Shown here in pieces: positions 1 to 61,278 of a DNA stretch of 63,310 nucleotides. Location: positions 114,381,548 to 114,444,857 of the forward strand of contig NC_068984.1 of NCBI RefSeq assembly GCF_001194135.2, given 5' to 3'. This stretch comes from Octopus bimaculoides. Taxonomy: Eukaryota. Numbering within the stretch: the stretch's first letter is position 1; every line of letters starts with the position of its first letter. The notes beneath the pieces were generated by a model. That model did no database searches, had not been told where the DNA came from, and saw only the letters and a list, made by a program, of their open reading frames with translations. Position numbers and translations under genes: made by a program.

Positions 1-22
1 GCACGCGCACACATGGCGGTGG
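1..22 (+). promoter_or_regulatory. Possible TSS-proximal CpG / YY1-like motif (gcacgcgcac acATGGCGGt)
   Basis: ATGGCGG core resembles the YY1 initiator motif; local CpGs in an otherwise CpG-poor window. Motif match only. Confidence 0.2.
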
Positions 23-28
23 GCAACT

Positions 29-91
29 ATGTATAAGATTCTGAAAATTACTGCTACATTACAAATCAGGCTGATGAGGAATAGACAAATG
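29..91 (+). CDS. NEK11: Putative first coding exon of NEK11-like kinase (MYKILKITATLQIRLMRNRQM)
   Basis: ATG at 29 opens a stop-free frame ending at a strong donor ATG|GTAAGA (92). Phase 0 joins the AG at 5348 to give ...RQM-VLKKIYL. No homology support and no Gly loop; an in-frame alternative ATG lies at 74. Confidence 0.45.
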
Positions 92-128
92 GTAAGAATT
101 TGTTAAATCCGAAACCTGGTTCCTGTTT
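63..128 (+). ncRNA. Minimal type-I hammerhead ribozyme, core intact
   Basis: CUGAUGA 71-77; helix II 78-90/98-110 (11 of 13 pairs, G78-C110 closing); GAAA 111-114; quasi-palindromic helix III ACC(U)GGU 114-120; triplet GUU 119-121; helix I CAGG 67-70/CCUG 122-125, extendable by AAA/UUU. Confidence 0.65.
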
Positions 129-429
129 AATAATGATTTTTTTAGGTGATTTTAAATGTCTTGCCTGCTCACGTTTTTGGTATGCTGCTATATTTCATGT
201 TGAGAACTTTTTAGGTCTTAATAGACACAAAATGTGATCTATTTCTAGCGCATTAATTGTCCACGTTAGTGGTCAACGTTATTTTTAAAATGTACCTTAA
301 TCCCTGAGATTGCAGATAATATTTCTGAATCTCTTTGATTCTTTAAATGTGCTGGCCCCCTGATAATTAATCGATATTAATTAATATATTAATATATGAA
401 TAATTACCAGATCTTATAATAATATTTAC

Positions 430-860
430 CCATTATATATATATATATATATATAAACATTTTCAGAATGAGATAAAAAACCAAGGCTGTGAAAGATTTC
501 AGAGCATTTATAAAGAGAAGGTCTTACAGCTGTTTCCGGGATATTTTATATATCCCTTCATCGGAGATGGTGTAAGAAAATGGTTAAGTAACAGTTATTC
601 TAGATAAGATATGAAATAGAGAGTGAAATAGAGGAATGAAAATAGACATGAGATATGCAGGGATATTGCATCTGTAGATCCAATATTTAGGTAGAATGGT
701 ATACGTATGAGATTCCAGTACCTTGTGAGTAAGTTCCAATTGTTTTTAAAATTGGTCATTCCAAGTATAGAGTTTGTACACAGTGTTATTGATATTGAAT
801 CCAGGGTTTTATTTAAAGTGACTTAAAAGTTGGGAATGTATTTGTAAGGTCAAATCGAAA
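430..860 (-). mobile_element. Decayed Penelope-like element 3' fragment carrying an HHR-like motif
   Basis: HHR-like motif at 522-567 on the minus strand; the upstream minus-strand sequence translates to decayed ORF-like text. Confidence 0.35.
522..567 (-). ncRNA. Degenerate minimal hammerhead ribozyme
   Basis: Minus strand reads TCT CCGATGA A GGGATAT ataaa ATATCCC G GAAA CAGCTG TA AGA. It has a 7-bp helix II, palindromic ACAGCTGT helix III and a GUA triplet, but a U4>C core change and only a 3-bp helix I. Confidence 0.5.
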
Positions 861-1962
861 ACAGGAAGAGAGGAACAAAGAAAAGAAAAAAGAAAAGAAG
901 AAAAACAGAGAGAGAGATAATAAAGTGATGAAGAGAGGGAAAATGAACTGGTTAGGGGTCAGTCAAGATATATTGATAGAAGGTATGGGGAGGTGAGGGT
1001 GATAGAGAGAGAAAGATATGAGGATGCAAAAGATGATAGGGTAAAGAGTAAAGGAGTGGCAGAGAGAAGGAATGGGGGGGGGTGATGGGTGATAGAGAGA
1101 GAGAGGTATGAGAGTATAATGAGTAAAGGAGCGTCAGGTATGTAGTGATAGAGCCTAAGTGAAGGGCAGAGAGAGGGGGTAGGGTTAGTAAAATGGTGGA
1201 ATGAAGAATTTGGGAATATAGGTTAGGTTGGTTAGAGGACAGGTCAGTGCTTAGTAGTAGAAGAATATATATATGTGAAGATGTATACACATGCATGTAT
1301 TAAACATGTATATAGATATTTATACATATCAACACCTACACATACAACACGTACTTGTATGTATATGTACATATGTACACCCATAAATATGTGTATCTGT
1401 ATGTATTATTGCCCCTGCACATGCAGATATATATACCTTACATACACACACACATACACACGCATATACGTATGCACACAATTAAATGGTTCAGAATTGT
1501 AACCCCCCCCCCCAAAAAAAAACCCCAGCAGGTAGAGACAGGTATGTGTGTGTTTGCATCCCCTTACCTTGACATCATGTGATGGTTTTAAATAGGCATC
1601 ACTGTCATACAGATGATACTGTTACCTAGTAAGTTAATCCTTTCTCAAACACACGCAATTTATAGGTTGGTACTCAATTCTGGATTCTGTAGAATCAAAC
1701 AGACATGAGAGAAATTCTCCCTTATAAGATGGTCTATCATAGGCAGCTTTTACCAAAAATTTGATATCTCTTCTCAGAAGTCAAATGAACTTCAGCAACT
1801 TGAAATAACTTAGTTGGAGACAATGAACCACTTGGTGAATTTGGACCCTAACATGTAAGCTTATAATCCACTTGATAAGGCACTGGCATGGCTGTGTAGT
1901 TAAGAAGTTCACTATCTAATAACATGAAAAATTTGCAAGCAGGTTACTATCAAAAAGTTTTA

Positions 1963-2164
1963 CCCTTTAGCACTTACACTGCCCATATCTGGCCCAAATA
2001 TTTTACCTGTTTTATGTTCAATTGGCCTCTCACACTTACTGTACAATGTCATTATAATCACATCATTGAAATCCCGAAGCTACAAGATAAAACATGATTA
2101 ATTCAAAACAATATGAATAAATAAGCATTACATTGATAGAGTAATCTGAGTGCTAAAAGGTTAA
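1963..2164. mobile_element. TTAA-type MITE (family A, ~200 bp)
   Basis: Termini ttaccctttagcac...tgctaaaagggttaa; same body as copies at ~48710-48927 and 58520-58743. Confidence 0.6.
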
Positions 2165-3126
2165 AAATGTTGAATGTAAGTTGTTGGGGTGGGGTACCTT
2201 TGGATCAAGAAGTGACACAAGATTTCCTTTCTATTCAAGGAGCAGTGAGGAGCTTGGGAAAGACAGAAGCAGTTTGAGAATGAGAGGAAATGAGTGAAAG
2301 TTGTATAATTTGTTGAAGTGGTAGAACTGATATGAAGACTGGTAGGAAAAGAGGCCTATTTTTTTATCTGTATATGTGATGTGGTGAGGCTCTGTCTGTG
2401 GTCTGGGCTCAGCTATGAGTCCACTTGATTGTGGACTCATAATAACCATGCACAAGGAAAAATTGCTACATCTCTTCAGATTTGTTCCCCTCCTTATGCT
2501 TCCATATTCTTTCTCTTTTAGTTTTATTTCTCTCACCCTACTCTTTGTACATCTATTTGGTAACATGAGAAAACATCACTTTCTGACAAAAGATACTGTT
2601 AAAAATTTTGAACTTGTTTTTTTATGATGAAGCAATTTATAAACTTTTGAACCTTTAATATATACAGTTGAATTTCGATTTATGAATGCCTTTCATCACA
2701 AAAAAAAAATTGATTTACAAACAATTTTTCAAACATAAAACATCTTGGGTGATGAACATGCAAGCTGGCAACAATGGTTGACATCAAGTTGGGAGTATCA
2801 GGTTGACATCAAACAGCAGAGCATCGGGTGCTATCTAGGTTTCACTCAGTGCACATTCCTGCTCAAATTCACTGTGCCTTCTTTTGAATTTTCGATAGGA
2901 AAAATAGTTTTGGTTTAAAAACATTTTGGGTGACAAACAGCCTTCAGAAACAAATTAAATTTGGAAACTGAGGTTCTACTGCATGCATGTGTGTTCCTTG
3001 TCCTTGGCCAAAAAATAAACCTAAACATTCCTCTTATTGTGCATTCTTATATATACTTGATACATTAACACATACGCGAATAAGAAGCAGACTTACAGAT
3101 ACAAATGTTGAGTATATGTCTTTCGG

Positions 3127-3158
<32 letters not shown>

Positions 3159-3539
3159 GAAGATCCAGGATGACATGGGATGAAGTAGTGAAAAATTACC
3201 TTCAGATCTTGAGTCTCACTGAGGAGTTGACAAAGAGCTGAGATGGTTGGTGATTTGTTGTGCTTGAGAAAACCTGTTCATGTAAGTAAAATTGAGACCC
3301 TAAAGGCATATCATTTATGTCTCTGCCCCTGCGCACAATTTGTCCCTGACAAATCTCTCCCCCAACACTCATCTTCCTAACACACCTTCAGTCCTCTTCC
3401 CTTTATCTCCCACTCTCCTTTTGGGCTCCCACGAACTTAATTGCACTCAGTCTGTCTTTAATAAATATCTCCTCTACACTCATCTTGCTAACACCCACTC
3501 CTTCCATCACTTATATATACCTCCCTGTCACATTTGGGT

Positions 3540-3639
<100 letters not shown>

Positions 3640-4077
3640 TTGGATAGCCATATATCTCCACTTCTGCAAGATACCTATTTCTGTCACTCTACTCATACTC
3701 TAAACTTTCATTGCCTGGCTCAAGGCCACCTCCCTCAATTCTACTCTTCACTCAGTTGAGTGACCTTGTCTAGCAAGTTAATAGGTAACCTTGCTGTTGC
3801 TGGTTCTGGTACCATGTAATATATACTCAGTGCACTCTGTAAAGTGATTGGTGTTAGGAAGGGCATCCAGAAAAAGCAGACAGTAGAGTTTGGTGCAGTC
3901 GTCTGACTTGGCAGGTCATATCAAACCATGCAAGCAAAAAAAGTGAACATTAAATAATGATGATGATGATTGTTAGTGTGTATGTATGTATGTATGTATG
4001 TATGCATGTATGTATGTATGTGTGTGTGAGTATACACACAACTGTTTGTATATTGACATGTGCTCTGTTAGACATAT

Positions 4078-4935
4078 TAGGTGGTATCAAAAAGTTCCCA
4101 AACTAGTTCTGTAGCATACCAACAGATGGCAGCACATGGTTGCATGCAAAGTAAGAGCTAGCAGTGACCTTCGTGAGGCAGTGTGCCAAGTGACGTTGCT
4201 GTGCTTACTTCACAAATTGTGAAATTTGTGTTCTTGTGCTCATGTGTATGTGGTAGTCTGCAATTTTATCCTGGACAGGAAGTTGGAACAAAGAGCCAAC
4301 ATGAAATTTTGTGTTAAACTCAGGAAGTCTGCTACAGAGGCATTGAGCATGCTTTGGCAAGTTTACGGCAACAAGGCAATGGTTTGTATGCAATGTTTTG
4401 TGTGGGGCAGATGTTTCAAAAGGCATGATTGATCTGCAGCTCAATCAAGAGCATTTTGTTTTTTTTGTTTCATCCACAATATTGTACATCAACAATTCAT
4501 CCTGCAAAGCCAGACCATCAATTGAAAATTCTACTGTGACATTTTGAAGCATCTGAGGGAGGACAATCGATAAAAGCAACTGGATCAGTGAAGCATGAAG
4601 AATTGGATTCTTCCTGACAACAATGCATCCTGTCTCTGAGCTCTCCTTCCTCACGAGTTTCTCACCAAAAATAACTTGGTATCACTTCCACACCCACCCT
4701 ATTCACTAGATGTAGCACCTATGTTCTTCCATCTCTTCCCCGAGATGAAAAGGGAGCTCAAATGTTGCCGTTTTAGCACCATTGTCAAAATCAAGAGCAA
4801 ATCACAGAAGGTCCTTGACTTGCTAACAGATAACAACTTCCAGGCCAGATTCCAAAAGTGGAATGCTGGGACCAGTGTATTGCTGTACAAGGTGGTTATT
4901 TTCAAAGGAAATGATGTTAAAACTTAGGTATTAAC
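4078..4935 (+). mobile_element. Mariner-family DNA transposon remnant (deleted, frameshifted transposase)
   Basis: 5' end aggtggtatcaaaaagttccc. ORFs contain EQRANMKFCVKLRKSATE (HTH), WILPDNNA and LPHPPYSLDVAP (YSPDLAP motif). Confidence 0.8.
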
Positions 4936-4994
4936 GTCAGCGTCTTATGAAGCTAAATTTATAAGTTCTAAAATTGCAGAAGAATTCATTACTG

Positions 4995-5067
4995 GGCAGT
5001 TTAGCTTAATGGTAAAGCACTTGACGCGTAATCACAGGGATGTGAGTTCGAGTCTCATGGCTGGCCA
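4995..5067 (+). pseudogene. tRNA-Thr(CGT)-like sequence, probably a pseudogene or solo SINE head
   Basis: Perfect D stem GCTT/AAGC; T arm GTGAG-TTCGAGT-CTCAT; acceptor stem 6 of 7 pairs; anticodon loop CGCGTAA (U33>G) with a bulged stem; T5 run at 5076-5080. Confidence 0.55.
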
Positions 5068-5338
5068 GTAGCATATTTTTCTGCAATGTATGGATAATTT
5101 ATCCTGATCATGCTATTTATTAGCATTATCACGCGTTTGAGAATAATAAAAAATTATTTCTCTATCTTTCAATACATCTCAATGCTTCTAAAACAAACCT
5201 TGTTTGTTTACTTTCATCATTAGGTAAATAAGTTATTTTTATTAAACATAACTAGTTTAGGAACCTTTTGATATTACCTCATGCTTTATGAATGTTTAAA
5301 TCAAACTCAAGCTTATCTAAAAATTTTTTCATTTATAG

Positions 5339-5510
5339 TTCCCAAAAGGTTCTAAAAAAAATTTATCTCAATGAAAAAAAACCCAAAGAAACTGATGCTG
5401 CTGAACAGGAAGCAGCCTTGTTATCACAGCTCTCAAATCCAAACATTCTGAAGTTCCTAGACAAATTAATTGATGATGAATGTTTCTGTATAATCACTGA
5501 ATATTGCGAA
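5339..5510 (+). CDS. NEK11: NEK11-like exon, kinase subdomains II-V (SQKVLKKIYL...EQEAALLSQLSNPNILKF...CIITEYCE)
   Basis: Aligns by eye with NEK11 KVLKEIS...LEAQLLSKLDHPAIVKF...FCIITEYCE. Acceptor tag at 5338 (phase 2) or aag at 5348 (phase 0); donor GTAAGT at 5511. Confidence 0.93.
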
Positions 5511-6691: not shown

Positions 6692-7305
6692 AGTGTTACT
6701 CATATAGTAAGTGAATGTAGCATGCTGGCACAGAAAGAATACAAGAAAAGACATGACAATCTAGGGAGAGCAATCCACTGGGAACTTTGTAGAAAGCTAG
6801 GATTTGACCATACTGATAAACGGTATGAACATAACCTAGTAAAGTACGAGAAAGTAAGAAATACAAGATGTTGTGGCACTTTAACATTCAGAGTGACAGA
6901 GTAATAGAAGCTAGAAGGCCGGATTTAGTAGTAGTAGATAAAGAGAATAGAAAGTGCCTGAGAATTGACTTTACAGTCCCAAATGATGAAAAAATTAATA
7001 TGATAGGTATAGAACAAGTAGCAAAGTACCAGGACCTAGCCATTGATTTACAAAGACTATGGAAAGTGCAGGTAAAATGTATCCCAGTAGTTATAGGTGC
7101 ATTGAGAACTATCCCTAGAGATCTGAACAGATGGATAGAGGAAATAGGTATAAAACCCAGTTTAGTACAGCTCCAGGAAACAGAGTTATTAGGGACAGCT
7201 AGGATACTTAGGAGTGTTCTTGGCAACTAAGGTTACTTGCTGTAACCTGATGTTAAGATTTTTTTTCTTTTCCAACAGTCTAATCTGTTGAGTGTGTATG
7301 AAACT
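6690..7305 (+). mobile_element. 3' end of an R4/Dong-like non-LTR retrotransposon (CCHC knuckle plus restriction-like endonuclease)
   Basis: HIVSECSMLAQKEYKKRHD and RRPDLVVVDK...IDFTVP motifs across one frameshift; preceded by (TAG)n and ends in (TAA)n. Confidence 0.85.
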
Positions 7306-10116: not shown

Positions 10117-10265
10117 GGTGGAGATCTGGATCAATATATTGAAAAATGTGTGAGGGCTAAAAGCACAATAAGTATAAAACAGACACTAGATTGGTTTATT
10201 CAGATACTGCTGGGAGTCAACTATATACATTCACAGCATATATTACACCGAGACTTAAAGTCAAG
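10117..10265 (+). CDS. NEK11: NEK11-like exon, subdomains V-VIb (GGDLDQYIEKC...DWFIQILLGVNYIHSQHILHRDLKSR)
   Basis: tatag acceptor, AG|GTAAG donor at 10266, catalytic HRDLK; phase 0 in, phase 2 out. Not in the supplied ORF track in this frame. Confidence 0.96.
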
Positions 10266-10376
10266 GTAAGACCTTTTTTTTTTCCTGTTATTTTGCTTTG
10301 TTTAACATGCCAACATAGGTTAAATGTTACACATACACAAATGCAAGCATACACACACACTCATACACATGTATTC

Positions 10377-26289: not shown

Positions 26290-27175
26290 ATGTAGTTTAG
26301 AGTCATACCCAGGACCTAGAGAAAGCATATGACTGTGGATGGAGATGCAATGTGGCAGGTGTTGCAGTTGTATGGAGTAGATGGTAGATTTTTGAAAGCT
26401 GTACAGAGATTTTATAGAGAAAGTAGGGTGTGTGTTAGGGTAGGTGGTGAAGTATGTGAGTGGTTTAAGGTGAAGGTGGGGTTAAGAGGGTTGTGTGATA
26501 TCTCCATGACTGTTCAATTTATATATGGATGATGAGGTGAGAGATGTGAATGCTAGAACCCTTGTAGGGGAGCTCAAATGGTGGGAGAAAATAGAGAAAG
26601 ATGGCAGGTGAGTCAGTTGTTTGCTGATGATACAGCACCGGTGGTGGGTTCGGAAGAGCAACTGAAGAGACTGGAGGTAGAGTTTGGAAGAGTGTTTGAG
26701 AGGAGGAAACTGAAAGTGAATGTAGCTAAGAGTAAGGTGATGAGATGTTTGAGAGATGGAATGGCTAGTAGGATGGATGTGAATATAAATGGTGAGCTGT
26801 TAGAGGAGGTGAGTGTTTTTAAGTTTCTGGGATCACATGTGATGGCTGATGGGAGGTTGGCTGAGGAAATGGGATATAGAGTGAGGGAGGAGAGTAAGAT
26901 ACTTGGAGACTTGGAGTTGTGAAAGGTATGCTGAGAGGTAAAAGGTTGAGTATGAAAGTGAAAAGAGGTGTGTATGAGGGCGTGATTGTGCCGACAATGT
27001 TATATGGTACAGAGACATGGGGGCTGAGAGAGGCAGAAAGGAGGTGGCTAGATGTGTTTGAGATGAGATGTTTGAGGGCTATGGTTGGTGTGACATGGAT
27101 GGACAGGATGAAGAATGAGGAGGTGCGAAGGCGAGCAGGAATGAGAGAAAAATTAACAACCAGAATGGATAGATG
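26290..27175 (+). mobile_element. RTE-clade LINE reverse transcriptase fragment
   Basis: FKVKVGLR, QLFADDT, LKVNVAKSKVM, FKFLGS and PTMLYGTETW motifs; runs into a gap. Confidence 0.88.
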
Positions 27176-28157
27176 NNNNNNNNNNNNNNNNNNNNNNNNN
27201 NNNNNNNNNNNNNNNNNNNNNNNNNNNNNNNNNNNNNNNNNNNNNNNNNNNNNNNNNNNNNNNNNNNNNNNNNNNNNNNNNNNNNNNNNNNNNNNNNNNN
27301 NNNNNNNNNNNNNNNNNNNNNNNNNNNNNNNNNNNNNNNNNNNNNNNNNNNNNNNNNNNNNNNNNNNNNNNNNNNNNNNNNNNNNNNNNNNNNNNNNNNN
27401 NNNNNNNNNNNNNNNNNNNNNNNNNNNNNNNNNNNNNNNNNNNNNNNNNNNNNNNNNNNNNNNNNNNNNNNNNNNNNNNNNNNNNNNNNNNNNNNNNNNN
27501 NNNNNNNNNNNNNNNNNNNNNNNNNNNNNNNNNNNNNNNNNNNNNNNNNNNNNNNNNNNNNNNNNNNNNNNNNNNNNNNNNNNNNNNNNNNNNNNNNNNN
27601 NNNNNNNNNNNNNNNNNNNNNNNNNNNNNNNNNNNNNNNNNNNNNNNNNNNNNNNNNNNNNNNNNNNNNNNNNNNNNNNNNNNNNNNNNNNNNNNNNNNN
27701 NNNNNNNNNNNNNNNNNNNNNNNNNNNNNNNNNNNNNNNNNNNNNNNNNNNNNNNNNNNNNNNNNNNNNNNNNNNNNNNNNNNNNNNNNNNNNNNNNNNN
27801 NNNNNNNNNNNNNNNNNNNNNNNNNNNNNNNNNNNNNNNNNNNNNNNNNNNNNNNNNNNNNNNNNNNNNNNNNNNNNNNNNNNNNNNNNNNNNNNNNNNN
27901 NNNNNNNNNNNNNNNNNNNNNNNNNNNNNNNNNNNNNNNNNNNNNNNNNNNNNNNNNNNNNNNNNNNNNNNNNNNNNNNNNNNNNNNNNNNNNNNNNNNN
28001 NNNNNNNNNNNNNNNNNNNNNNNNNNNNNNNNNNNNNNNNNNNNNNNNNNNNNNNNNNNNNNNNNNNNNNNNNNNNNNNNNNNNNNNNNNNNNNNNNNNN
28101 NNNNNNNNNNNNNNNNNNNNNNNNNNNNNNNNNNNNNNNNNNNNNNNNNNNNNNNNN

Positions 28158-29650: not shown

Positions 29651-30857
29651 TGTACTCTTTTACTTGTTTCAGTCATTTTGACTGTGGCCATGCTGGAGCA
29701 CCGTCTTTAGTCGAGCAAATCGACCCCAGGACTTATTCTTTGTAAGCCTAGTACTTATTCTATCTGTCTCTTTTGCTGAACCACTAAGTTACGGAGACGT
29801 AAATACACCAGCATTGGTTGTCAAGCAATGTTGGGGGGACAAACACAGACACCNNNNNNNNNNNNNNNNNNNNNNNNNNNNNNNNNNNNNNNNNNNNNNN
29901 NNNNNNNNNNNNNNNNNNNNNNNNNNNNNNNNNNNNNNNNNNNNNNNNNNNNNNNNNNNNNNNNNNNNNNNNNNNNNNNNNNNNNNNNNNNNNNNNNNNN
30001 NNNNNNNNNNNNNNNNNNNNNNNNNNNNNNNNNNNNNNNNNNNNNNNNNNNNNNNNNNNNNNNNNNNNNNNNNNNNNTATATATATACACACATATATAT
30101 ATATATATATACATATATACAACAGGCTTCTTTCAGTTTCCATCTACCAAATCCACTCATAAGGCTTTGGTCGGCCCGAGGCTATAGTAGAAGACACTTG
30201 CCCAAGGTGCCATGCAGTGGGACTGAACCCGGAACCATGTGGTTGGTAAGCAAGCTACTTACCACACAGCCACTCCTACGCCTATATGTTTAATAAATTC
30301 TTCATCTTTGTGATCACACTGTTATGCAGAACAATGGAAAGAACAACAGGAATCGCTATTAACTTTCAGCTTAATGGAAACATCTTTAATGTCTAAAAGC
30401 TGTTCAGAATTTAACAGATCATTAAACTATTACATGTTAATAATCATACTCTTGTAGCTAATTTTCCAGCTCTTCTAACCATCCTCTTGGCAGTTGTTGC
30501 AGCTTATAAAAGATAGGAACTGGTAGTTAACTTTCAGTTAACACTAAGTCATCAGTCAATGGCCCACTTTACCACCCTCTTCTCTCCTCCCTTTTCTTTC
30601 CTTTTTGGTACAGTGCCAATGACTAACCTCACCTTCCCAATTCAGATACCAAGGAAGTATAATTTCCAATGACTGCATTTTAGACAAAGTGATAAAAAAA
30701 AGTGACTGTGTGGTAAGTAGCTTGCTTACCAACTACATGGTTCTGGGTTCAGTCCCACTGTGTGACACCTTGGGCAAGTGTCTTCTACTAGAGCCTCGGG
30801 CCGACTAAAGCCTTGTGAGTGGATTTGGTAGACGGAAACTGGAAGAAGCCCGTCGCA

Positions 30858-34260: not shown

Positions 34261-34993
34261 GACAACTTGCCCAGCCATAATTTTTTAAAAGGAATATTTC
34301 TTGAACTATCACCAGCATTCAGTTATTGTTTAGAGAAACTGAAGAGGTGTCTAGTTCACTGTTATATTACACATACAAAAATATATGTATATGTATATAT
34401 ATATGTGTATTTTATATNNNNNNNNNNNNNNNNNNNNNNNNNNNNNNNNNNNNNNNNNNNNNNNNNNNNNNNNNNNNNNNNNNNNNNNNNNNNNNNNNNN
34501 NNNNNNNNNNNNNNNNNNNNNNNNNNNNNNNNNNNNNNNNNNNNNNNNNNNNNNNNNNNNNNNNNNNNNNNNNNNNNNNNNNNNNNNNNNNNNNNNNNNN
34601 NNNNNNNNNNNNNNNNNNNNNNNNNNNNNNNNNNNNNNNNNNNNNNNNNNNNNNNNNNNNNNNNNNNNNNNNNNNNNNNNNNNNNNNNNNNNNNNNNNNN
34701 NNNNNNNNNNNNNNNNNNNNNNNNNNNNNNNNNNNNNNNNNNNNNNNNNNNNNNNNNNNNNNNNNNNNNNNNNNNNNNNNNNNNNNNNNNNNNNNNNNNN
34801 NNNNNNNNNNNNNNNNNNNNNNNNNNNNNNNNNNNNNNNNNNNNNNNNNNNNNNNNNNNNNNNNNNNNNNNNNNNNNNNNNNNNNNNNNNNNNNNNNNNN
34901 NNNNNNNNNNNNNNNNNNNNNNNNNNNNNNNNNNNNNNNNNNNNNNNNNNNNNNNNNNNNNNNNNNNNNNNNNNNNNNNNNNNNNNNNNNNNN

Positions 34994-36336: not shown

Positions 36337-37274
36337 NNNNNNNNNNNNNNNNNNNNNNNNNNNNNNNNNNNNNNNNNNNNNNNNNNNNNNNNNNNNNNNN
36401 NNNNNNNNNNNNNNNNNNNNNNNNNNNNNNNNNNNNNNNNNNNNNNNNNNNNNNNNNNNNNNNNNNNNNNNNNNNNNNNNNNNNNNNNNNNNNNCAATAA
36501 AAACTTTAGAAATATCATGAATGTTCAAAATATTTATTAAAAAAATATTTATAAATATGCATGATTTCTAAGTTGTATAAAAATATGACAATTAAAGTTA
36601 AAACATTACGATGTGTAAACGTACATTATGATATAACATATAATGGGTAAATATATACGGTATGATGAAGTTATAAATTTACATGTATTATATTAAAAAC
36701 GTGTACATTAGGACACTTTTAGACACTTTAGAGACTGAATACTATAAATTCATTTATTGATTCTTGAAGGAATTGAACACACATATTGTATCTTGCGTTG
36801 GACATATGGTATTATTCCTGTGATTTTCCACCCTTATGTATCCATTTTTACTATAAGATATATATATCTGTATATATGTATGTGTATACATATGCCTGTA
36901 TGTATGTGTGTATGTATCATCAATGTTTTCTTTATCACAAATAAACAACAAACATTTACAGCAGAAATGAATGAACATATAATCTGCAGTCAATAATATA
37001 TATGTGTTTGTTTAAATATAATTATGTTTTTATTAGAAATAATACATTTCTAAATCTCTCAGAGAGATTTATACAGTTCTTGTAGTGATGATGGTGGAGG
37101 ATATCGACAGCACCCACTACACTCTCTGAGTGGTTGGCGTTAGGAAGGGCATCCAGCTGTAGAAACTCTGCCAAATCAGATTGGAGGTTGGTGTTGCCAT
37201 CCGGTTTCACCAGTCCTCAGTCAAATCATCCAACCCATGCTAGCATGGAAAGCGGACGTTAAACGATGATGATG

Positions 37275-43448: not shown

Positions 43449-46400
43449 NNNNNNNNNNNNNNNNNNNNNNNNNNNNNNNNNNNNNNNNNNNNNNNNNNNN
43501 NNNNNNNNNNNNNNNNNNNNNNNNNNNNNNNNNNNNNNNNNNNNNNNNNNNNNNNNNNNNNNNNNNNNNNNNNNNNNNNNNNNNNNNNNNNNNNNNNNNN
43601 NNNNNNNNNNNNNNNNNNNNNNNNNNNNNNNNNNNNNNNNNNNNNNNNNNNNNNNNNNNNNNNNNNNNNNNNNNNNNNNNNNNNNNNNNNNNNNNNNNNN
43701 NNNNNNNNNNNNNNNNNNNNNNNNNNNNNNNNNNNNNNNNNNNNNNNNNNNNNNNNNNNNNNNNNNNNNNNNNNNNNNNNNNNNNNNNNNNNNNNNNNGT
43801 TTCCACTGGTGGGGATGGTGATGGAGTTTTTCGAAAGACTGCATGGATGCCTTCTGGAGATGGACCGTCTGCTCAATATCCAGCTGTTTCAGTACAAACT
43901 TCTTCAGACAGTTCTTCAGGTATTTTTTTACCATTAATGTAAATTTCTTATTAGTTGACACATAATACTTAGATAGTGGAGGAGATATGATGTTGCTGTG
44001 GGCTGGAAGTATGCAAGAAGTTAAAATTTTTTTTTGACTAAAACACAACTGGGACCCTAAGTAAGGCATTTGTAAAATTTGAATGAAATTGGTTGTGTAG
44101 TTCTGGAGTTTTAGGGATTCACAAAGACACACACACACACAGACACACAGACATACATTCACAATTTTATATATATATATAGATATATATGTATAAAGTA
44201 TGTAGGAGATACTTGCCTAAGGTGCCATGCTGAAGGGCTAAACCCAAAACCATGTGGTTGGGAAGTGAACTTCTTAACCACACAGCAATTCCTACACTTA
44301 TATGATAGATGATTTAAGTATTTAATATTTTGAACAGCTCTGAGTACTTACTAAAATGATCCAGATTCTCAAATTAATCACTTGACTTCTTGTGACCAGG
44401 CGAACTTCAACAAACAGATGACACCAGTAAAACTTAACACAGCACTCTTGTCTTAACAACTCTTGTAAGAGAAAGTAAACCTCAAAACAACAAAACAAAT
44501 TCACAGCACCAACCAATACCTAGCACAACAAACCATTCCTTCCCAAGGCACAAGACAGCTTCTATGAAATAACAGTCAATTCTTTTTTCCAAATTCTGCA
44601 TTGGACAATGAACAAGTCCCTTAACTCTTTGGGGGTGGTTGGGGCACTTCAGGCTTGCAGCTTATCTTGGACGAGGAAGCCTGGCAGAGCCCATCCCTCT
44701 TCCAAGCTAAACTCCTTTCTACAGCTGAGTGGATTGGAACAACGTAAAATGAAGTGTTTTGCTCAAGAACACAACACATCACCTGGTCCAACACCCTAAC
44801 CACTAAGTCACGTGCCTCCACGTAATTTTGCCTAACCATCTTGAAGAACATATTAGACAATGTAGTTCCAGATACTTTTAAAAAGAAGGGATGGCCATTA
44901 CTAGGATATTTTGGCTTATAGGTCTGCAGATCTTTTTGATCTGGAGCTAAACGATAATATCAGTAACAACATCCCTGTAGAATTATTAGCATGCCTGCAC
45001 AAGTGTGTGCCTCCCGACTTTGTTTCTTCATAGCCTTCAGAAAAATGCATATTTTCTAATTAGATTTTCTAAAAATGCCTTTCAGATAGTGTAGATTACG
45101 ATTACACTGGAATTTAATGTAAAAAAAAAAAAAAAAGGTTGGCATGCACATATACATATACTGACACACAAGTCAATTTTGCTAGTAGTGTGTATCAGTA
45201 TGTATGTAAACGTGTCCACCAATTTGTTTCGCCTTAAATTTCGATCGATCATAATCTACATCATCTTTCAGAAAATTCCATCATCTTTGCTGAAAATTCC
45301 ATTAAAAAATACTAATTTTTAAGATGAAACAAACTTGTTTGAATTATTTGAAATTCCTCTCCGACTCACTCCGAGGAAAAATTTGACGATAAATTTCGAT
45401 ATAATCGGAATTTACATCATCTAAACAGTACTTGCAGAAAAATCTGAAAGCTATAAGGAAACAAATTCGTGGGGAGCATACATTTATAGTAGATATGCCC
45501 CACCTGCAGCTTTCGTACTGGTTTACATTGGAAAAAATTATAAACTGACAAGCTGTTCGAAAAATTGCCAAATTTCAGTTATTTTAATTATATAAACATG
45601 TTTTATATGAAACTGAAAGCAAGACCACTTGTCAACAGTGGATTGGTTGGCTGCTTGAGGTTGCCTGTTTGTAGCAACAAAAATGTGGTTAGAAAATGCA
45701 AATAGATCTTATTGCAGAAATTGCCGATGTGCTTGTGTTCTTGCGTAATACGACAGAGTGTGATGTCTTTTTGTTTTGTTCCAGTGTTTGTTTTTGCAAA
45801 CTAGAGGACTAGCTGAGTTAAGGCGGAGAAAACTTTTTAGTATATTGAATATGTTTCAAGTAGAAGCAGACACAATCATGGAAAGTACAGTTAAAGCAAG
45901 GGAGACAACTTATTTATACGCATCAACAAGTGCGCCTCTACACAGACATTTGATCTACTAGAAATAGTAGCCATATTTCCTCCTCACATCAAACCTTCCT
46001 GTTTTAAAAAAGTAAAGAAATTTTGAGGCCACACAGGCCTCACAGACACACACACTCGCGTGTATATAGGTCTACAGGCATTATTACATGATTAAGAAGT
46101 TTGCTTCACAACCATGTGATTTGGGGATCAGTCCCACTGTTATTTCTTTATTGCCCACAAGGGGCTAAACATAGAGGGGACAAACAAGGACAGACAAAGG
46201 GATTAAGTCGATTATATCGACCCCAGTGAGTAACTGGTACTTAATTTATCGACCCCGAAAGGATGAAAGGCAAAGTTGACCTCGGCGGAATTTGAACTCA
46301 GAACATAACAGCAGGGTGTGGCACTTTTTCACACAGTTATCCTCATCCATTCTTGCCACATGTCCATACCAGCACAATCGTCTCTCTTGCACACCACAAC

Positions 46401-48365: not shown

Positions 48366-50894
48366 GTATGTAATGTTTTAAAATCAGATTTTGTTTTTCA
48401 AATATCATTAATGTGTTATAAGGTTGTCATGTACCTCCTCTATAGTTAAGATACATGTTTCTGGTACTTTGTTATATTTTAATCTCTCGATACCTGGTCT
48501 AAGCCATCTCCCTCAGGCAACATTTTTTTTTGCAGTGGGGGCTTGCAAATTACTTGGTAACCCCATTAGTGCCAGTGCCATGAAAAAGGCATGTAGTACA
48601 CTTTGTAAAATGATTGGCATTGGAGAGGACATTCAGTTATAGAAATCATGCCAAAACAGACGCTGAAACTCAGCATAGTCCTACAACACATCAGATCCTC
48701 TTAACCTGTTAGCATTTAAACTGGCTATATCTGGCCAACATATTTTACTAGTTTTATGTTCAAACTGGCCTGATCTGGCCTCTCACACCTTCCCTACTGT
48801 GTCATTCCAAAAAAAAACAATCACATCATCAAAATCTCAAAGCTATGAGATAATGCATGATTAATTCAAAGACACGAATAAATAAGCATTACATGTGACT
48901 GAGTAATATGAATGCTAAAGGGTTAAACCTATGCCAGCATGGAAGACAGATGTTAAATAACGAGGATGATGGTTAGGGTGAATTGTGATTGCAATTTGGT
49001 CAAATTTTATTAACAAGTTCTAATAAGAAAAATTATAAAATCAGGGGTGGTTGGTGTTAAGAAGGGCATCCAGCGATAAAAACCATGCCAAAACAGACAC
49101 AGAAGCCTGGTGTAGTCTTCTGCCTGGCCGGCTCCTGTCAAACCACTTAACCTGTGTCAGCATGGAAGACAGACATTAAATGATGATGATAATGTTCAAG
49201 ATTTTTTATCCTATAAAAAAAAAGTAATGGGGTCAATTTATTTGACTAAAATTCTCCAAGACGGTGCCTCTGAAACAACTAAAAGATAAAAAATAAAAGA
49301 TAAAGGTATTGTTTTTTTTTTTTGTTTCAGTCATTTTGACTGCGGCGATGCTGGAGCATCCCCTTAAAGGGTTTTTAGTCGAAGAAATCAACCCCAGGAC
49401 TTATTCTTTGTAAGCNNNNNNNNNNNNNNNNNNNNNNNNNNNNNNNNNNNNNNNNNNNNNNNNNNNNNNNNNNNNNNNNNNNNNNNNNNNNNNNNNNNNN
49501 NNNNNNNNNNNNNNNNNNNNNNNNNNNNNNNNNNNNNNNNNNNNNNNNNNNNNNNNNNNNNNNNNNNNNNNNNNNNNNNNGGACTGGCTTGTGCGGGTGG
49601 CACATAAAAGACACCATTTCGAGCGTGGCCGTTTTCGTGCGGGTGACACGTAAAAGCACCCACTACACTCTCTGAGTGGTTGGCGTTAGGAAGGGCATCC
49701 AGCTGTAGAAACTCTGCCAAATTAGATTGGAGCCTGGTGTTGCCATCCGGTTTCACCAGTCCTCAGTCAAATCGTCCAACCCATGCTAGCATGGAAAGCG
49801 GACGTTAAACGATGATGATGATGATGATGATACAACAAGTTTCTTTCAGTTTCCCTCTACCAAATTCACTCATAAGACTTTGATCAGCCTGAGGCTATAG
49901 TAGAAGACTTTTGCCCAAGGTGCCATACAGTGGGACCGAACCTGGAACCTTGTGGTTGAAAACCAAGCTTCTTACCACACAGCCATGCCTGCACCTATTA
50001 AGGGATTTTTTTTTTAGGTGTAAAAATAATTGGAAAATATCATTTTCATCACTGAAATGACTATTGCTTTCAGCGATAAACATGATTTATCAGAAATATT
50101 GAAATTTTACACTTAACGGCCTTTAATAATTTAAATGAAATCTGACCATTTTTTAGGTTTTTGTAATTAACATAAATTATTAATAATTATTAACAGTATT
50201 TCATTTTTTTTTAAAATTGTCAAAACCTGTCTTTCAAAGAAAGGATGGCTTGTTGGCATAGTAACAAAACAAAAGGATTCAATCTAATTAAGAGCTTATT
50301 ATTTACAGTGGAAATAGAAGTGATTTTTAACAAATATCTGGCACTCTTTGTTATATTTCTTAATAATTGATTTTCAGCCTAAGAGCTGCCTACAGTTTCT
50401 GCAATGTCTTTTCTGCAATCAGCTATTATGTCAACAAGACAGAATAGTCAACTACAGGTATGGTTAAAAACAAAGCAAAAAAAATCAAAAAACCATGCAA
50501 ATATTATTGGTTTCAAATTTTGGCACAAGGCCAGCAATTTTGGGGAAGGGGTAAGTCAATTACATTGACCCCAATTCTCAACTGGTACTTATTTTATCGA
50601 CCTCCAAAAAAGGTGAAAGGCAAAGTTGACCTTAGTGGAATGTGAACTCAAATGTAAAGACAAATGAAATGCCGTGAAGCATTTTACCCAAAACATGTAT
50701 ATTATATTAGCAGCAGACATCACAAGGTGCAGGTAAGTCTGTGTGGTTAAGAAGCTTGTTTCCCAACCAAGTGGTCTTGGGTTCAATTCTACTGTGCAGC
50801 ACTATGGGCAAGTGTCTTTTACAACATCCACAAGCCAACCAAAGCCTTTTGTATGGATTTAGTTGATGGAAATTGAAAGAAGCCTGTTGTGTAT

Positions 50895-50984: not shown

Positions 50985-51991
50985 CACACACACATAATCA
51001 TCATCATCATCATTTAGCATTCGTTTTCCATGCTGGCATAGGTTAGACAGATTGACTGGAACTGGTAAACCAGAGAGCTGCCCCAAGTTCCAGTCTGATT
51101 TGGCATGGTTTCTATGGCTGGATGTCCTTCTTAACACCAACTACTCCAAAAGTGTCATGGGTGCTTTTTACATGCCACCAGCATGGGTGCTTTTATGTGC
51201 CAGTTACATGACACCGGCATCAGCTACAACAACAATTTCATTTAGTTTGACAATCATCATCATCGTTTAACGTCCGCTTTCCATGCTAGCATGGGTTGGA
51301 CGACTTGACTGAGGACTGGTGAAACCGGATGGCAACACCAGGCTCCAATCTAAATTTGGCAGAGTTTCTACAGCTGGATGCCCTTCCTAACGCCAACCAC
51401 TCAGAGAGTGTAGTAGATGCTTTTACGTGTCACCTGCACGAAGGCCAGTCAGGCAATACTGGCAACGGCCACGCTCGAAATGGTGNNNNNNNNNNNNNNN
51501 NNNNNNNNNNNNNNNNNNNNNNNNNNNNNNNNNNNNNNNNNNNNNNNNNNNNNNNNNNNNNNNNNNNNNNNNNNNNNNNNNNNNNNNNNNNNNNNNNNNN
51601 NNNNNNNNNNNNNNNNNNNNNNNNNNNNNNNNNNNNNNNNNNNNNNNNNNNNNNNNNNNNNNNNNNNNNNNNNNNNNNNNNNNNNNNNNNNNNNNNNNNN
51701 NNNNNNNNNNNNNNNNNNNNNNNNNNNNNNNNNNNNNNNNNNNNNNNNNNNNNNNNNNNNNNNNNNNNNNNNNNNNNNNNNNNNNNNNNNNNNNNNNNNN
51801 NNNNNNNNNNNNNNNNNNNNNNNNNNNNNNNNNNNNNNNNNNNNNNNNNNNNNNNNNNNNNNNNNNNNNNNNNNNNNNNNNNNNNNNNNNNNNNNNNNNN
51901 NNNNNNNNNNNNNNNNNNNNNNNNNNNNNNNNNNNNNNNNNNNNNNNNNNNNNNNNNNNNNNNNNNNNNNNNNNNNNNNNNNNNNNNNNNN

Positions 51992-52315
51992 NTCTTATTC
52001 TAGCAGCTACACTTTCAGCGCACCCACCCCCACTACTAACTTGGTCGCCCAGATAGCGGAAGCTATCGACTACCTCTAGTTTTTCACCCTGGAATGAGAT
52101 AGAAGTTGTTTCCTGTTTGTTTACAGTCTTTATTGCACCTGAACATCTGCCACAAACAAAAACTAACTTCCTAGTTAACCTGCCTTTGATGTTGCTGCAC
52201 CTCTTATGTGTCCATAGCTTGCACCGGGTACATCTTATAGAGTTACTACCTACTCCTTTTCTACATACTGAGCAGGGCCATCTACCTAAAGGGGTTTGTG
52301 TTTTATCTACCTTCC
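51992..52315 (-). mobile_element. RTE-like LINE fragment with PHD-like Cys motif
   Basis: Same sequence as 60300-60640 (GRWPCSVCRKGVGSNS...CKLWTHKRC on the minus strand). Confidence 0.8.
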
Positions 52316-52633: not shown

Positions 52634-52679
52634 GACACCTGATGAAGGCTGGAGGGTATATCAGCCGAAACATTGTGTT
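52634..52679 (+). ncRNA. Minimal hammerhead motif in a Penelope-type short repeat
   Basis: GACAC CTGATGA A GGCTG gagggtatat CAGCC GAAA C ATT GTGTT: 5-bp helix I and 5-bp helix II. Helix III is ACAU, one transition away from the palindromic ACGU. Confidence 0.6.
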
Positions 52680-53060
52680 AACAACATACAAGATGAGGAC
52701 AAATATCTGTCAAATGTAAATAATGTAAATAAAGTAGAATATGAAATTTGAGGAAGATTTAGTTACTATTTCTAGCAGATCAAGCTACCACATAGAGGAG
52801 CTCCTCAGTGGCTCTTGTATTCAGATTTTAACCTTTTGATACCAAACCATCTGAGACCACTCCTAGTTTTATGATACAATTTCCCTATTTTAAAGTGATC
52901 TAAATTAAAACCTTTGATTAAAATTCCATTAATTTGTGTTCCAAACACCAGCTTCATAATAACAAAGTTATTTCAATAGATTTTCAAATTTTCAAAATTA
53001 ATTATAACAAAGGCAGTGTATTTTTAACAATTATGGAAAAGAGGATGTTAAAATGACGAT

Positions 53061-59699: not shown

Positions 59700-60860
59700 A
59701 CTTGACTCAACAGGTCTTCGCAAGCACAGTCTATTGTCCAGTGATTGAAGGATGCTCTTAAATGGGCCAGTTATGCTGCACTGGCATAGGCCACAGTTAC
59801 AGTCTTACTTAGCTTGCTGGGTCTTCTCAAGCACAGTATATCTCCAAAGGTCTCGGTCACTTGTCATCACCCCTGTGAGGCCCAACGTTCGAAAGTCGTG
59901 CTTCACCACCTCATCTCAGGTCTTCCTGAGTCTACCTCTTCTACAGGTTCCCTCAACTGCTAGGGTGTGACATGTTTTCACACAGTTGTCCTCATCCATA
60001 CACAACACATGACCATACCAGCACAGTCATCTCTCTTGCACGCCACATCTGATGTTTCTTATGTCCAACTTTTCTCTCAGTGTGCATACACTCTGTCGTG
60101 TATGCACAATTGACATTACACATCCAGCAGAGCATACTAGCTTCATTCCTTGCAAGCTTACACATGTCCTCAACAGTCATGGCTCATGTTTCACTGCCAT
60201 GTAGCATGGCTGTTCGCACACGTGTCATACAGTCTAGCTTTTACTCTGAGCGAGAGACCCTGTGTCACCAGCTGAGGTAGGAGCTCTCTGAACTTTGCCC
60301 AGGTTATTCTTATTCTAGTAGCTACACTCTCAGAGCATCCACCCCCACTACTGACTTGGTCACCTAGGTAACGGAAGTTATCAACTACTTGTAGTTTTTT
60401 TCCCCCTGGTATGTGACGGAAGCTGTTTTCTGCACATTTTCAGTGTTTGTTGCCCCTGAGCATTTGCCACACGCAAAAACTATCTTCCCAGTTAGCCTTC
60501 CTTTCACATTGCTGCACTGCTTATGTGTCCATAGCTTACACCATCTACATCTTATGGAGTTTCTACCTATGCCTTTTCTACAGATTGAGCAGGGCCATCT
60601 TCCTAAAGGGATTTGTGGTTTGTCTGCCTTCCTTCTTATTAAGACTTTGGTTTTTGCTAGATTGACTCTAAGGCCCTTCGATTCTAGACCTTGCTTCCAC
60701 ACCTGAAACTTCTCTAGTTCTGATAGTGACTCAGCTATGAGAGCCAGGTCATCAGCATAGAGAAGCTCCCAGGGGCATCCTGTCTTGAATTCCTCTGTTA
60801 TTGCCTGGAGGACTCTGATGAATAAGTGGGGACTGAGGACTGATCCTTGGTGGACCCCTG
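59700..60860 (-). mobile_element. RTE-like LINE 3' part (RT C-terminus, PHD-like Cys motif)
   Basis: LLYADDL, GLRVNLAKTKV and WPCSICRKGIGRNSIRC...WTHKQC motifs; continues into the RTE-tail repeat at 59345-59700. Confidence 0.88.
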
Positions 60861-60913: not shown

Positions 60914-61067
60914 CCTTTGTAGGTTAGAAATTCTAACTCTGAAGAATTAACTCTTTAGTATATACATATGTGTGTGTGTTAGAGATAAAAGAGTTAATGG
61001 TAAGTATTTTGTTATATAATAACCCTGCTTATAATTTGAATCTTCATTTTCTTAACACTCTTTTCAG

Positions 61068-61278
61068 AGAATGCAAGATAGCACTGGGACCAGAGATGTT
61101 TCAGAATGTTTACAAATACCTATGGCAAGTTCGCTTAAAGAAAATAAGAGAAACCTGTCTCAATGAAGAAGAGATGAAAGGTTTGCAAGAGATAGTGAAG
61201 GAAACAAACTATGGAATGATGGTGGAACAATTGATTTTCTTTGAAGAACAGGAGAACCCTGGAATGTTTAAATATTAA
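61068..61278 (+). CDS. NEK11: NEK11-like terminal coding exon (RECKIALGPEMFQNVYKYLWQVR...MVEQLIFFEEQENPGMFKY*)
   Basis: ttttcag acceptor; matches the NEK11 C-terminus KLGTEVFEEVYNYLKRAR...VDQLLYFEEQ; TAA at 61276-61278. Confidence 0.93.

Follow-up and report, generated by a model that had tools for sequence, protein, structure and literature searches.

A candidate retroelement-type minimal hammerhead relic in an intron of the octopus NEK11 gene

We analyzed a 63,310-nucleotide stretch of the Octopus bimaculoides genome (contig NC_068984.1, positions 114,381,548 to 114,444,857; hereafter the window) and found a complete type-I hammerhead core at positions 67-125 of its + strand. We consider it probable, with moderate confidence, that this segment is the solitary relic of a minimal type-I hammerhead of the retroelement type, inactive or nearly inactive, in an intron of NEK11. 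By direct reading, the core comprises C3 U4 G5 A6 N7 G8 A9, G12 A13 A14, an A15.1-U16.1 pair and an H17 that is not G. An initial annotation of this DNA had assigned coordinates to the core, the helices, U120 and the H17 residue U121, and a base-by-base reading of window positions 1-600 agreed with every one of them, as well as with its distance of 30 nt from position 91 to the cleavage position 121 (121 minus 91). The parts of the motif are as follows.

67-70 (+): CAGG, 5' strand of helix I (positions 2.4-2.1), with CCUG 122-125 as its hammerhead partner; direct reading
71-77 (+): catalytic box CUGAUGA (C3-A9); exact match
78-110 (+): helix II hairpin of 33 nt and 13 positions, closed by G78-C110 (10.1-11.1); direct reading and folding
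111-114 (+): catalytic box GAAA (G12, A13, A14, A15.1); exact match
114-120 (+): minimal helix III, ACCUGGU, a near-palindrome with a central U; direct reading and folding
121 (+): H17, a U, giving a GUU triplet with the predicted scissile bond at 121/122; direct reading
122-125 (+): CCUG, 3' strand of helix I (positions 1.1-1.4); direct reading

A77 is immediately followed by G78, the partner of C110, so that no extra base separates position 9 from 10.1. Helix II (strands 78-90 and 98-110) contains 11 pairs over its 13 positions, one of them G-U, with mismatches at A81/A107 and A83/A105, and its 7-nt loop (91-97) reads GGUAAGA, a sequence resembling a 5' splice site. The hairpin has a constrained energy of -6.3 kcal/mol and pairing probabilities of 0.9-1.0, except for U82-A106 (0.33). 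CCUG occurs twice, the copy at 122-125 coming 7 nt after that at 115-118. Helices I and II can thus be drawn as the initial annotation had them, but its helix III, three pairs (A-U, C-G, C-G) around a 1-nt loop, cannot close.

Two snoRNA-like features around the motif were dismissed. CUGAUGA could be taken for the C box of a C/D-box snoRNA, but no CUGA D box lies within the following 120 nt. A weak SNORD48-like match directly downstream of the motif (129-175, +; 17.8 bits, gathering score 36) has no visible D box and is probably a chance match. By eye, the first ~30 bases of the window (1-30, +; GCACGCGCACACATGGCGGTGGGC...) are far more G+C-rich than the window average of 35%, and may belong to the margin of a promoter, exon or other element situated upstream of the window.

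To judge how often such a motif arises by chance, we used a descriptor that required the core boxes, a G-C-closed helix II within an energy threshold, the A15.1-U16.1 and 15.2-16.2 pairs, an H17 other than G, and a helix I with a minimum of 3-4 bp. The candidate was the sole match to the strict descriptor on the two strands of the window. In 400 Mb of order-1 Markov sequence there were four loose matches and none at the quality of the candidate. With planted seeds (18 million, corresponding to 72 Gb of order-1 Markov sequence), the expectation per window, both strands included, was 3.5e-5 at candidate quality and 1e-3 for loose matches. CTGANGA seeds numbered 46 in the window, compared to 31.5 expected. 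We also dropped the 15.2-16.2 requirement and ran each of the 720 possible letter permutations of the boxes against the real window; the 719 permuted cores gave one match altogether, the true core two. The low Markov expectation, together with the result of the decoy cores, indicates that the hammerhead core is specifically enriched in the window, and the motif is not a chance match at this scale. For a 2.5-Gb genome, the expectation is about 1.4 motifs at candidate quality and about 40 loose ones, and one such motif could arise by chance somewhere in the whole genome.

In the folding model, the ribozyme fold is disfavored. When 60-130 was folded, the structure of minimum free energy, which was also the centroid, was a hairpin at -14.4 to -14.7 kcal/mol that closes an internal loop formed by both catalytic boxes.

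64-121 (+): competing extended hairpin, AAUCAGG 64-70 paired with CCUGGUU 115-121 (7 bp); minimum free energy and centroid

The hammerhead fold came to -6.4 kcal/mol with helix III and -9.6 kcal/mol without it. The pairing of CAGG 67-70 with CCUG 115-118 had a probability of about 0.99 in isolation and 0.7-0.99 across all contexts folded; for the helix I pairs (67-70/122-125), the corresponding values were 0.01 in isolation and, when longer contexts were folded, 0.07-0.27. The competing hairpin is itself of ordinary stability, with a z-score of -1.56, and 11 of 200 shuffled sequences folded as well.

As a monomer, the only helix III available has 2 bp and a 3-nt loop, at a positive energy cost. 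Because helix III is so small and nearly palindromic, the candidate could cleave only as a dimer, in which ACCUGGU would form six pairs around a central U-U mismatch. The predicted energy of such a double hammerhead is -26.5 kcal/mol, versus -28.8 kcal/mol for two separate alternative hairpins and -31.4 kcal/mol for the dimer minimum. A second copy that could support dimer cleavage in cis was found neither in the 63 kb downstream nor in the 62 nt of upstream sequence that the window holds, and the hammerhead-like motif at 52639, described below, is unrelated in helix III (ACAU).

The Infernal search proposed in the initial annotation returned no match at three stringencies: the Rfam hammerhead models (Hammerhead_1, Hammerhead_3, Hammerhead_II, HH9 and HH10) matched neither the window at gathering score nor, at E<=10, positions 1-300 or 55-135 (81 nt), although these models may not cover minimal retroelement hammerheads. 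Hammerheads that lack loop-loop contacts are slow at physiological Mg2+, and GUU is a weaker cleavage triplet than GUC. Judged by thermodynamics and general hammerhead biochemistry, the candidate would now be catalytically silent or nearly so, because helix III cannot form in the monomer and no second copy lies in cis, and because the preferred hairpin sequesters helices I and III, loop-loop contacts are absent and the triplet is GUU. The hammerheads of metazoan Penelope elements have very low activity, even as dimers (PMC4209133).

The gene named in the initial annotation, NEK11, was confirmed by homology and by the exon map, which put the motif on the sense strand. The following exons were located.

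5339-5510 (+): NEK11 kinase exon ..SQKVLKKIYLNEKK..ITEYCE (the 'KVLKKIYL' exon), with its acceptor AG at 5337-5338; tblastn
10117-10266 (+): NEK11 kinase-domain exon; homology
12954-13118 (+): NEK11 kinase-domain exon; homology
about 15560-15709 (+): NEK11 kinase-domain exon; homology
21765-21860 (+): NEK11 kinase-domain exon; homology

The exon at 5339-5510 is 70% identical to the Nek11-like protein P0002 of Argonauta hians (tblastn). With a 207-aa concatenate of four exons, the best matches were Nek11 or NEK11-like proteins of many animals, down to E = 1e-90, with 80% identity to Argonauta hians and 70% to cuttlefish. In Argonauta, the first coding exon encodes amino acids 1-48, including the glycine-rich loop (L001:10001-10144), and is followed by a 2.55-kb intron 1 (L001:10145-12694) and then by a 'KVLKRI' exon. 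A homology search of window positions 1-5342 gave no counterpart of this first coding exon; the interval has no assembly gap, the earliest run of Ns beginning at 17007. Since exon 1 is absent and exon 5339-5510 is the next one downstream, the motif reads as intronic: it appears to lie within the intron before this exon, in the sense direction and at a distance of about 5.2 kb on the upstream side. The same exon has a tRNA-like sequence about 270 nt upstream (4995-5066, +; Rfam tRNA, 33.6 bits, gathering score 29), which could represent a tRNA gene or else the head region of a SINE derived from a tRNA. In the cuttlefish, a 5S rRNA gene (L002:22954-23068, -; 53.5 bits) lies just downstream of the NEK11 gene model.

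The orthologue comparison that had been suggested found no conservation of the motif. No hammerhead was present in intron 1 of Argonauta hians NEK11 (L001:10145-12694) or in the locus of the cuttlefish Acanthosepion pharaonis (L002), and positions 1-600 of the window had no similarity to either L001 or L002 (57 kb together). Within the window, a pattern search allowing three mismatches and blastn with word size 7 detected no other copies of 1-600 apart from the (TA)n tract. Scanning JGI metagenomes with the pattern GGCTGATGAGG..CCGAAACCTGG gave six unrelated matches, mostly G+C-rich, and no copy of the candidate. No direct or inverted repeats near the motif bound an element, and a six-frame Pfam search of 1-3300, in which the upstream side, where the body of an element would be expected, amounts to 62 nt only, detected no remnant of a reverse transcriptase or GIY-YIG domain.

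The window contains another hammerhead-like motif, which is part of a retroposon family. It was found with the descriptor lacking the 15.2-16.2 requirement, and the cuttlefish locus has two stretches that align with 52636-52733, at 76% (E = 2e-14) and 72% (E = 4e-10) identity.

52634-52680 (+): second hammerhead-like motif, cited here as 52639; descriptor without the 15.2-16.2 requirement
L002:3800-3893 (+): Acanthosepion pharaonis copy; alignment
L002:31606-31703 (-): Acanthosepion pharaonis copy; alignment

The motif runs GACAC, CUGAUGA, A, GGCUG-loop-CAGCC, GAAA, CA, U, U, GUGUU. Its extra A between positions 9 and 10.1, its G10.1-C11.1 pair and its 4-nt minimal helix III are hallmarks of retroelement minimal hammerheads. 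About 100 nt separate it from the 3' end of a family common to the octopod and Acanthosepion pharaonis, and one of the two cuttlefish copies ends in a poly(A) run; no ORFs were found upstream of the cuttlefish copy. The minimal helix III is ACAU in the octopod copy and AUGU in one cuttlefish copy, a pattern expected if an ancestral ACGU had undergone CpG decay, and the inferred ancestor of the family also has a GUU triplet (consensus, GAAACGUU). The candidate and the second motif have no common sequence outside the core. The second motif establishes that hammerhead-like motifs on retroposons exist in this lineage and genome, and it raises the prior for the same kind of origin of the candidate.

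We therefore favor, at the moderate confidence given above, the reading of 67-125 as a retroelement relic. The candidate would descend from the insertion of a ribozyme-bearing retroelement, Penelope-like or a non-autonomous derivative, that was either 5'-truncated or reached upstream past the window edge. Penelope elements are an abundant and anciently expanded class of repeats in octopus genomes (PMC13282606, PMC8967140). Their hammerheads are mostly single dispersed motifs from shortened element copies, and those of metazoans combine a helix I of 4-5 bp with a long helix II and with a helix III that is minimal and palindromic (PMC4209133). The initial annotation had likened the candidate to this type; the short helix I, long helix II and tiny near-palindromic helix III bear out the likeness, but neither an element body nor copies were found.

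Other repeats are scattered through the window. ORF fragments resembling retrotransposon remnants occur at 26578-27170 (+), 60385-60702 (-) and 6868-7230 (+); by eye, ..FADDTA..KLKVNVAKSKVM.. and ..GLRVNLAKTKVL.. in such fragments look like reverse-transcriptase motifs, and ..RPDLVVVDKENRKCLRIDFTVPND.. is a further example of a retrotransposon-like fragment. The ORF at 60970-61278 had no match in a protein search. There are also interspersed repeat families of about 65-180 nt, with 5-9 copies each in both orientations and often ending in (ATG)n or (TA)n, which are probably SINEs of the kind abundant in octopus genomes. They include the following, among others.

16826-17004: interspersed repeat
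17745-17923: interspersed repeat
19831-20010: interspersed repeat
24015-24267: interspersed repeat
30079-30257: interspersed repeat
49653-49970: interspersed repeat

The window comes from a gapped draft assembly, with ten runs of Ns (3,595 bases in all), many of them flanked by (TA)n, and exons or repeats could be hidden in these runs.

17007-17619: N run
27176-28157: N run
29854-30077: N run
34418-34993: N run
36337-36494: N run
43449-43798: N run
49416-49580: N run
51486-51992: N run
elsewhere in the window: two N runs of 10 nt

Pure chance is the most serious of the alternatives to descent from a retroelement. On this account, an A/T-rich intron came to contain both boxes at a workable spacing, along with short complementary stretches, and was never part of a ribozyme. 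With 1.4 to 40 such motifs expected per 2.5-Gb genome, one would turn up sooner or later if many windows were scanned; no family, Rfam match or conservation was found, the stable fold is a plain hairpin of ordinary energy (z = -1.56), and helix I depends on a repeated 4-nt CCUG. However, the expectation per window is merely 3.5e-5 to 1e-3, a comparison with 719 decoy cores in this very sequence showed specific enrichment of the true core, and a repeat family is demonstrably the source of the window's other such motif. We consider chance unlikely. Far less probable, in our estimate, is that the extended hairpin at 64-121 is the relevant structure, for example as a transposon-end hairpin or a small-RNA precursor, and that the hammerhead boxes are incidental. 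That hairpin was the minimum free energy structure and centroid in every context folded (probability 0.7-0.99 for 67-70/115-118), yet its energy lies inside the shuffled range (z = -1.56; 11/200 shuffles as good), it matches no RNA family, it has no inverted or direct repeats on its flanks that would delimit an element, and it would leave the exact hammerhead core unexplained.

The initial annotation had gone further, taking 91|92 as the donor of exon 1 and proposing that splicing and self-cleavage exclude each other. A coding exon 1 at the motif was rejected on grounds of homology and reading frame, for the real coding exon 1 has no counterpart here and no frame links 1-91 to the kinase exon. 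An exon ending at 91 and read in the kinase frame would meet the stops UGA UGA at 72-77, which stem from the CUGAUGA box itself, and has no later ATG; translation from the ATG at position 74 across a junction with the acceptor at 5338 gives MRNRQMFPKGSKKNLSQ and a stop after 17 codons. Donor-like sequences are also common in the window, where GGTAAGA occurs three times on the + strand and four times on the - strand (seven in total) and GGTAAG 16 and 13 times, respectively. Given these stops and the commonness of such sites, nothing marks 91|92 as a used donor, and the splice-site look of the helix II loop would be a coincidence, although a non-coding 5' exon ending at 91 is possible. The acceptor-like UUUUUUUAG at 137-145 allows a 54-nt mini-intron (92-145) to be drawn, a pairing of donor and acceptor that could easily be coincidental in A/T-rich sequence.

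The least probable of the readings we weighed is that of an active module, exapted or retroelement-borne, in which the helix II loop is a used 5' splice site at 91|92 or, in a variant, the donor of a retroelement-borne mini-intron at 92-145. Binding of U1 or splicing would keep the ribozyme from folding, and splicing would be impossible after cleavage at 121/122, a mutual exclusion that would regulate NEK11. In its favor, AUG|GUAAGA is a good match to a 5' splice site, UUUUUUUAG could close the 54-nt mini-intron, the motif is on the NEK11 sense strand, and Penelope elements carry small spliceosomal introns beside their hammerhead (PMC4209133). Set against these points are the location of the true coding exon 1 outside the window, the lack of a frame from 1-91 into exon 5339-5510, the seven GGTAAGA sites, a predicted occupancy of the active fold of about 1%, the lack of a partner copy for dimer cleavage in the sequence searched, and the absence of the motif from the orthologous Argonauta intron and the cuttlefish locus. 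The proposed ribozyme-versus-spliceosome switch found no support, and we infer that the motif has no role in NEK11 expression. To our knowledge, competition between a natural self-cleaving ribozyme and the spliceosome has never been demonstrated.

Returning to the relic reading, we compared the candidate with known hammerheads. Minimal hammerheads of this kind were reportedly the subject of a study by Lunse, Weinberg and Breaker in 2016, and the conserved intronic hammerheads of amniotes (Rfam HH9 and HH10) are said to have been described by De la Pena & Garcia-Robles in 2010. Like HH9 and HH10, the candidate is a hammerhead in sense orientation within what reads as an intron of a protein-coding gene. 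Unlike them, it has no Rfam match and is absent from the orthologous Argonauta intron, whereas they are deeply conserved, match Rfam models and have stable monomer folds with tertiary contacts.

The closest resemblance is to the minimal hammerheads of Penelope-like elements (Cervera & De la Pena 2014, PMC4209133), with which the candidate has in common the type-I topology, the intact CUGANGA/GAAA core and G10.1-C11.1. As in those hammerheads, helix I (4 bp) has no defined loop 1, helix II is long and helix III consists of a few near-palindromic nucleotides and could form in a dimer only; loop-loop tertiary contacts are likewise absent, the motif is single and dispersed, and its activity would be very low. 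In contrast to Penelope hammerheads, no element body, pseudo-LTR beside the candidate or family of copies was found, and helix II is more A/U-rich and has 13 positions with an internal loop, compared to 6-8 bp in theirs. The palindrome is of odd length, with a central U-U mismatch in the dimer, H17 is U, and the extra nucleotide between 9 and 10.1 that the motif at 52639 possesses is missing. The overlap of a splice signal with the ribozyme, such that spliced and unspliced RNAs would differ, recalls the Penelope hammerhead of Drosophila virilis (PMC4209133), but there the 3' end of an experimentally known intron abuts helix I, whereas here loop 2 holds a heptamer that resembles a 5' splice site, a putative donor.

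Non-LTR retrozymes carry type-I hammerheads in tandem repeats of about 170-400 bp; 'solo' monomers also exist, and about 43% of the Xenopus copies are in introns (PMC7229834; bioRxiv 10.64898/2026.07.22.740005). The candidate resembles them in its type-I hammerhead, weak helix III and low-GC sequence. It differs in that no tandem repeat is present, 1-600 having no second copy downstream, and in that retrozyme hammerheads usually have helices I and II of 6 and 4 bp, respectively, together with loop-loop contacts.

The literature we searched contained almost nothing on cephalopod hammerheads, the only overlap being one paper on Penelope elements, which includes Octopus in its set of genomes. Retroelement-type minimal hammerheads have been described by the thousands per genome in invertebrates. 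The candidate would matter more only if the overlap with a splice site proved to be used, in which case it would be relevant to the purpose of intronic ribozymes. If the relic reading holds, 67-125 would be one more dispersed minimal hammerhead of the retroelement type, its value lying mostly in annotation, and would indicate that octopod genomes have motifs of this sort, also within genes.
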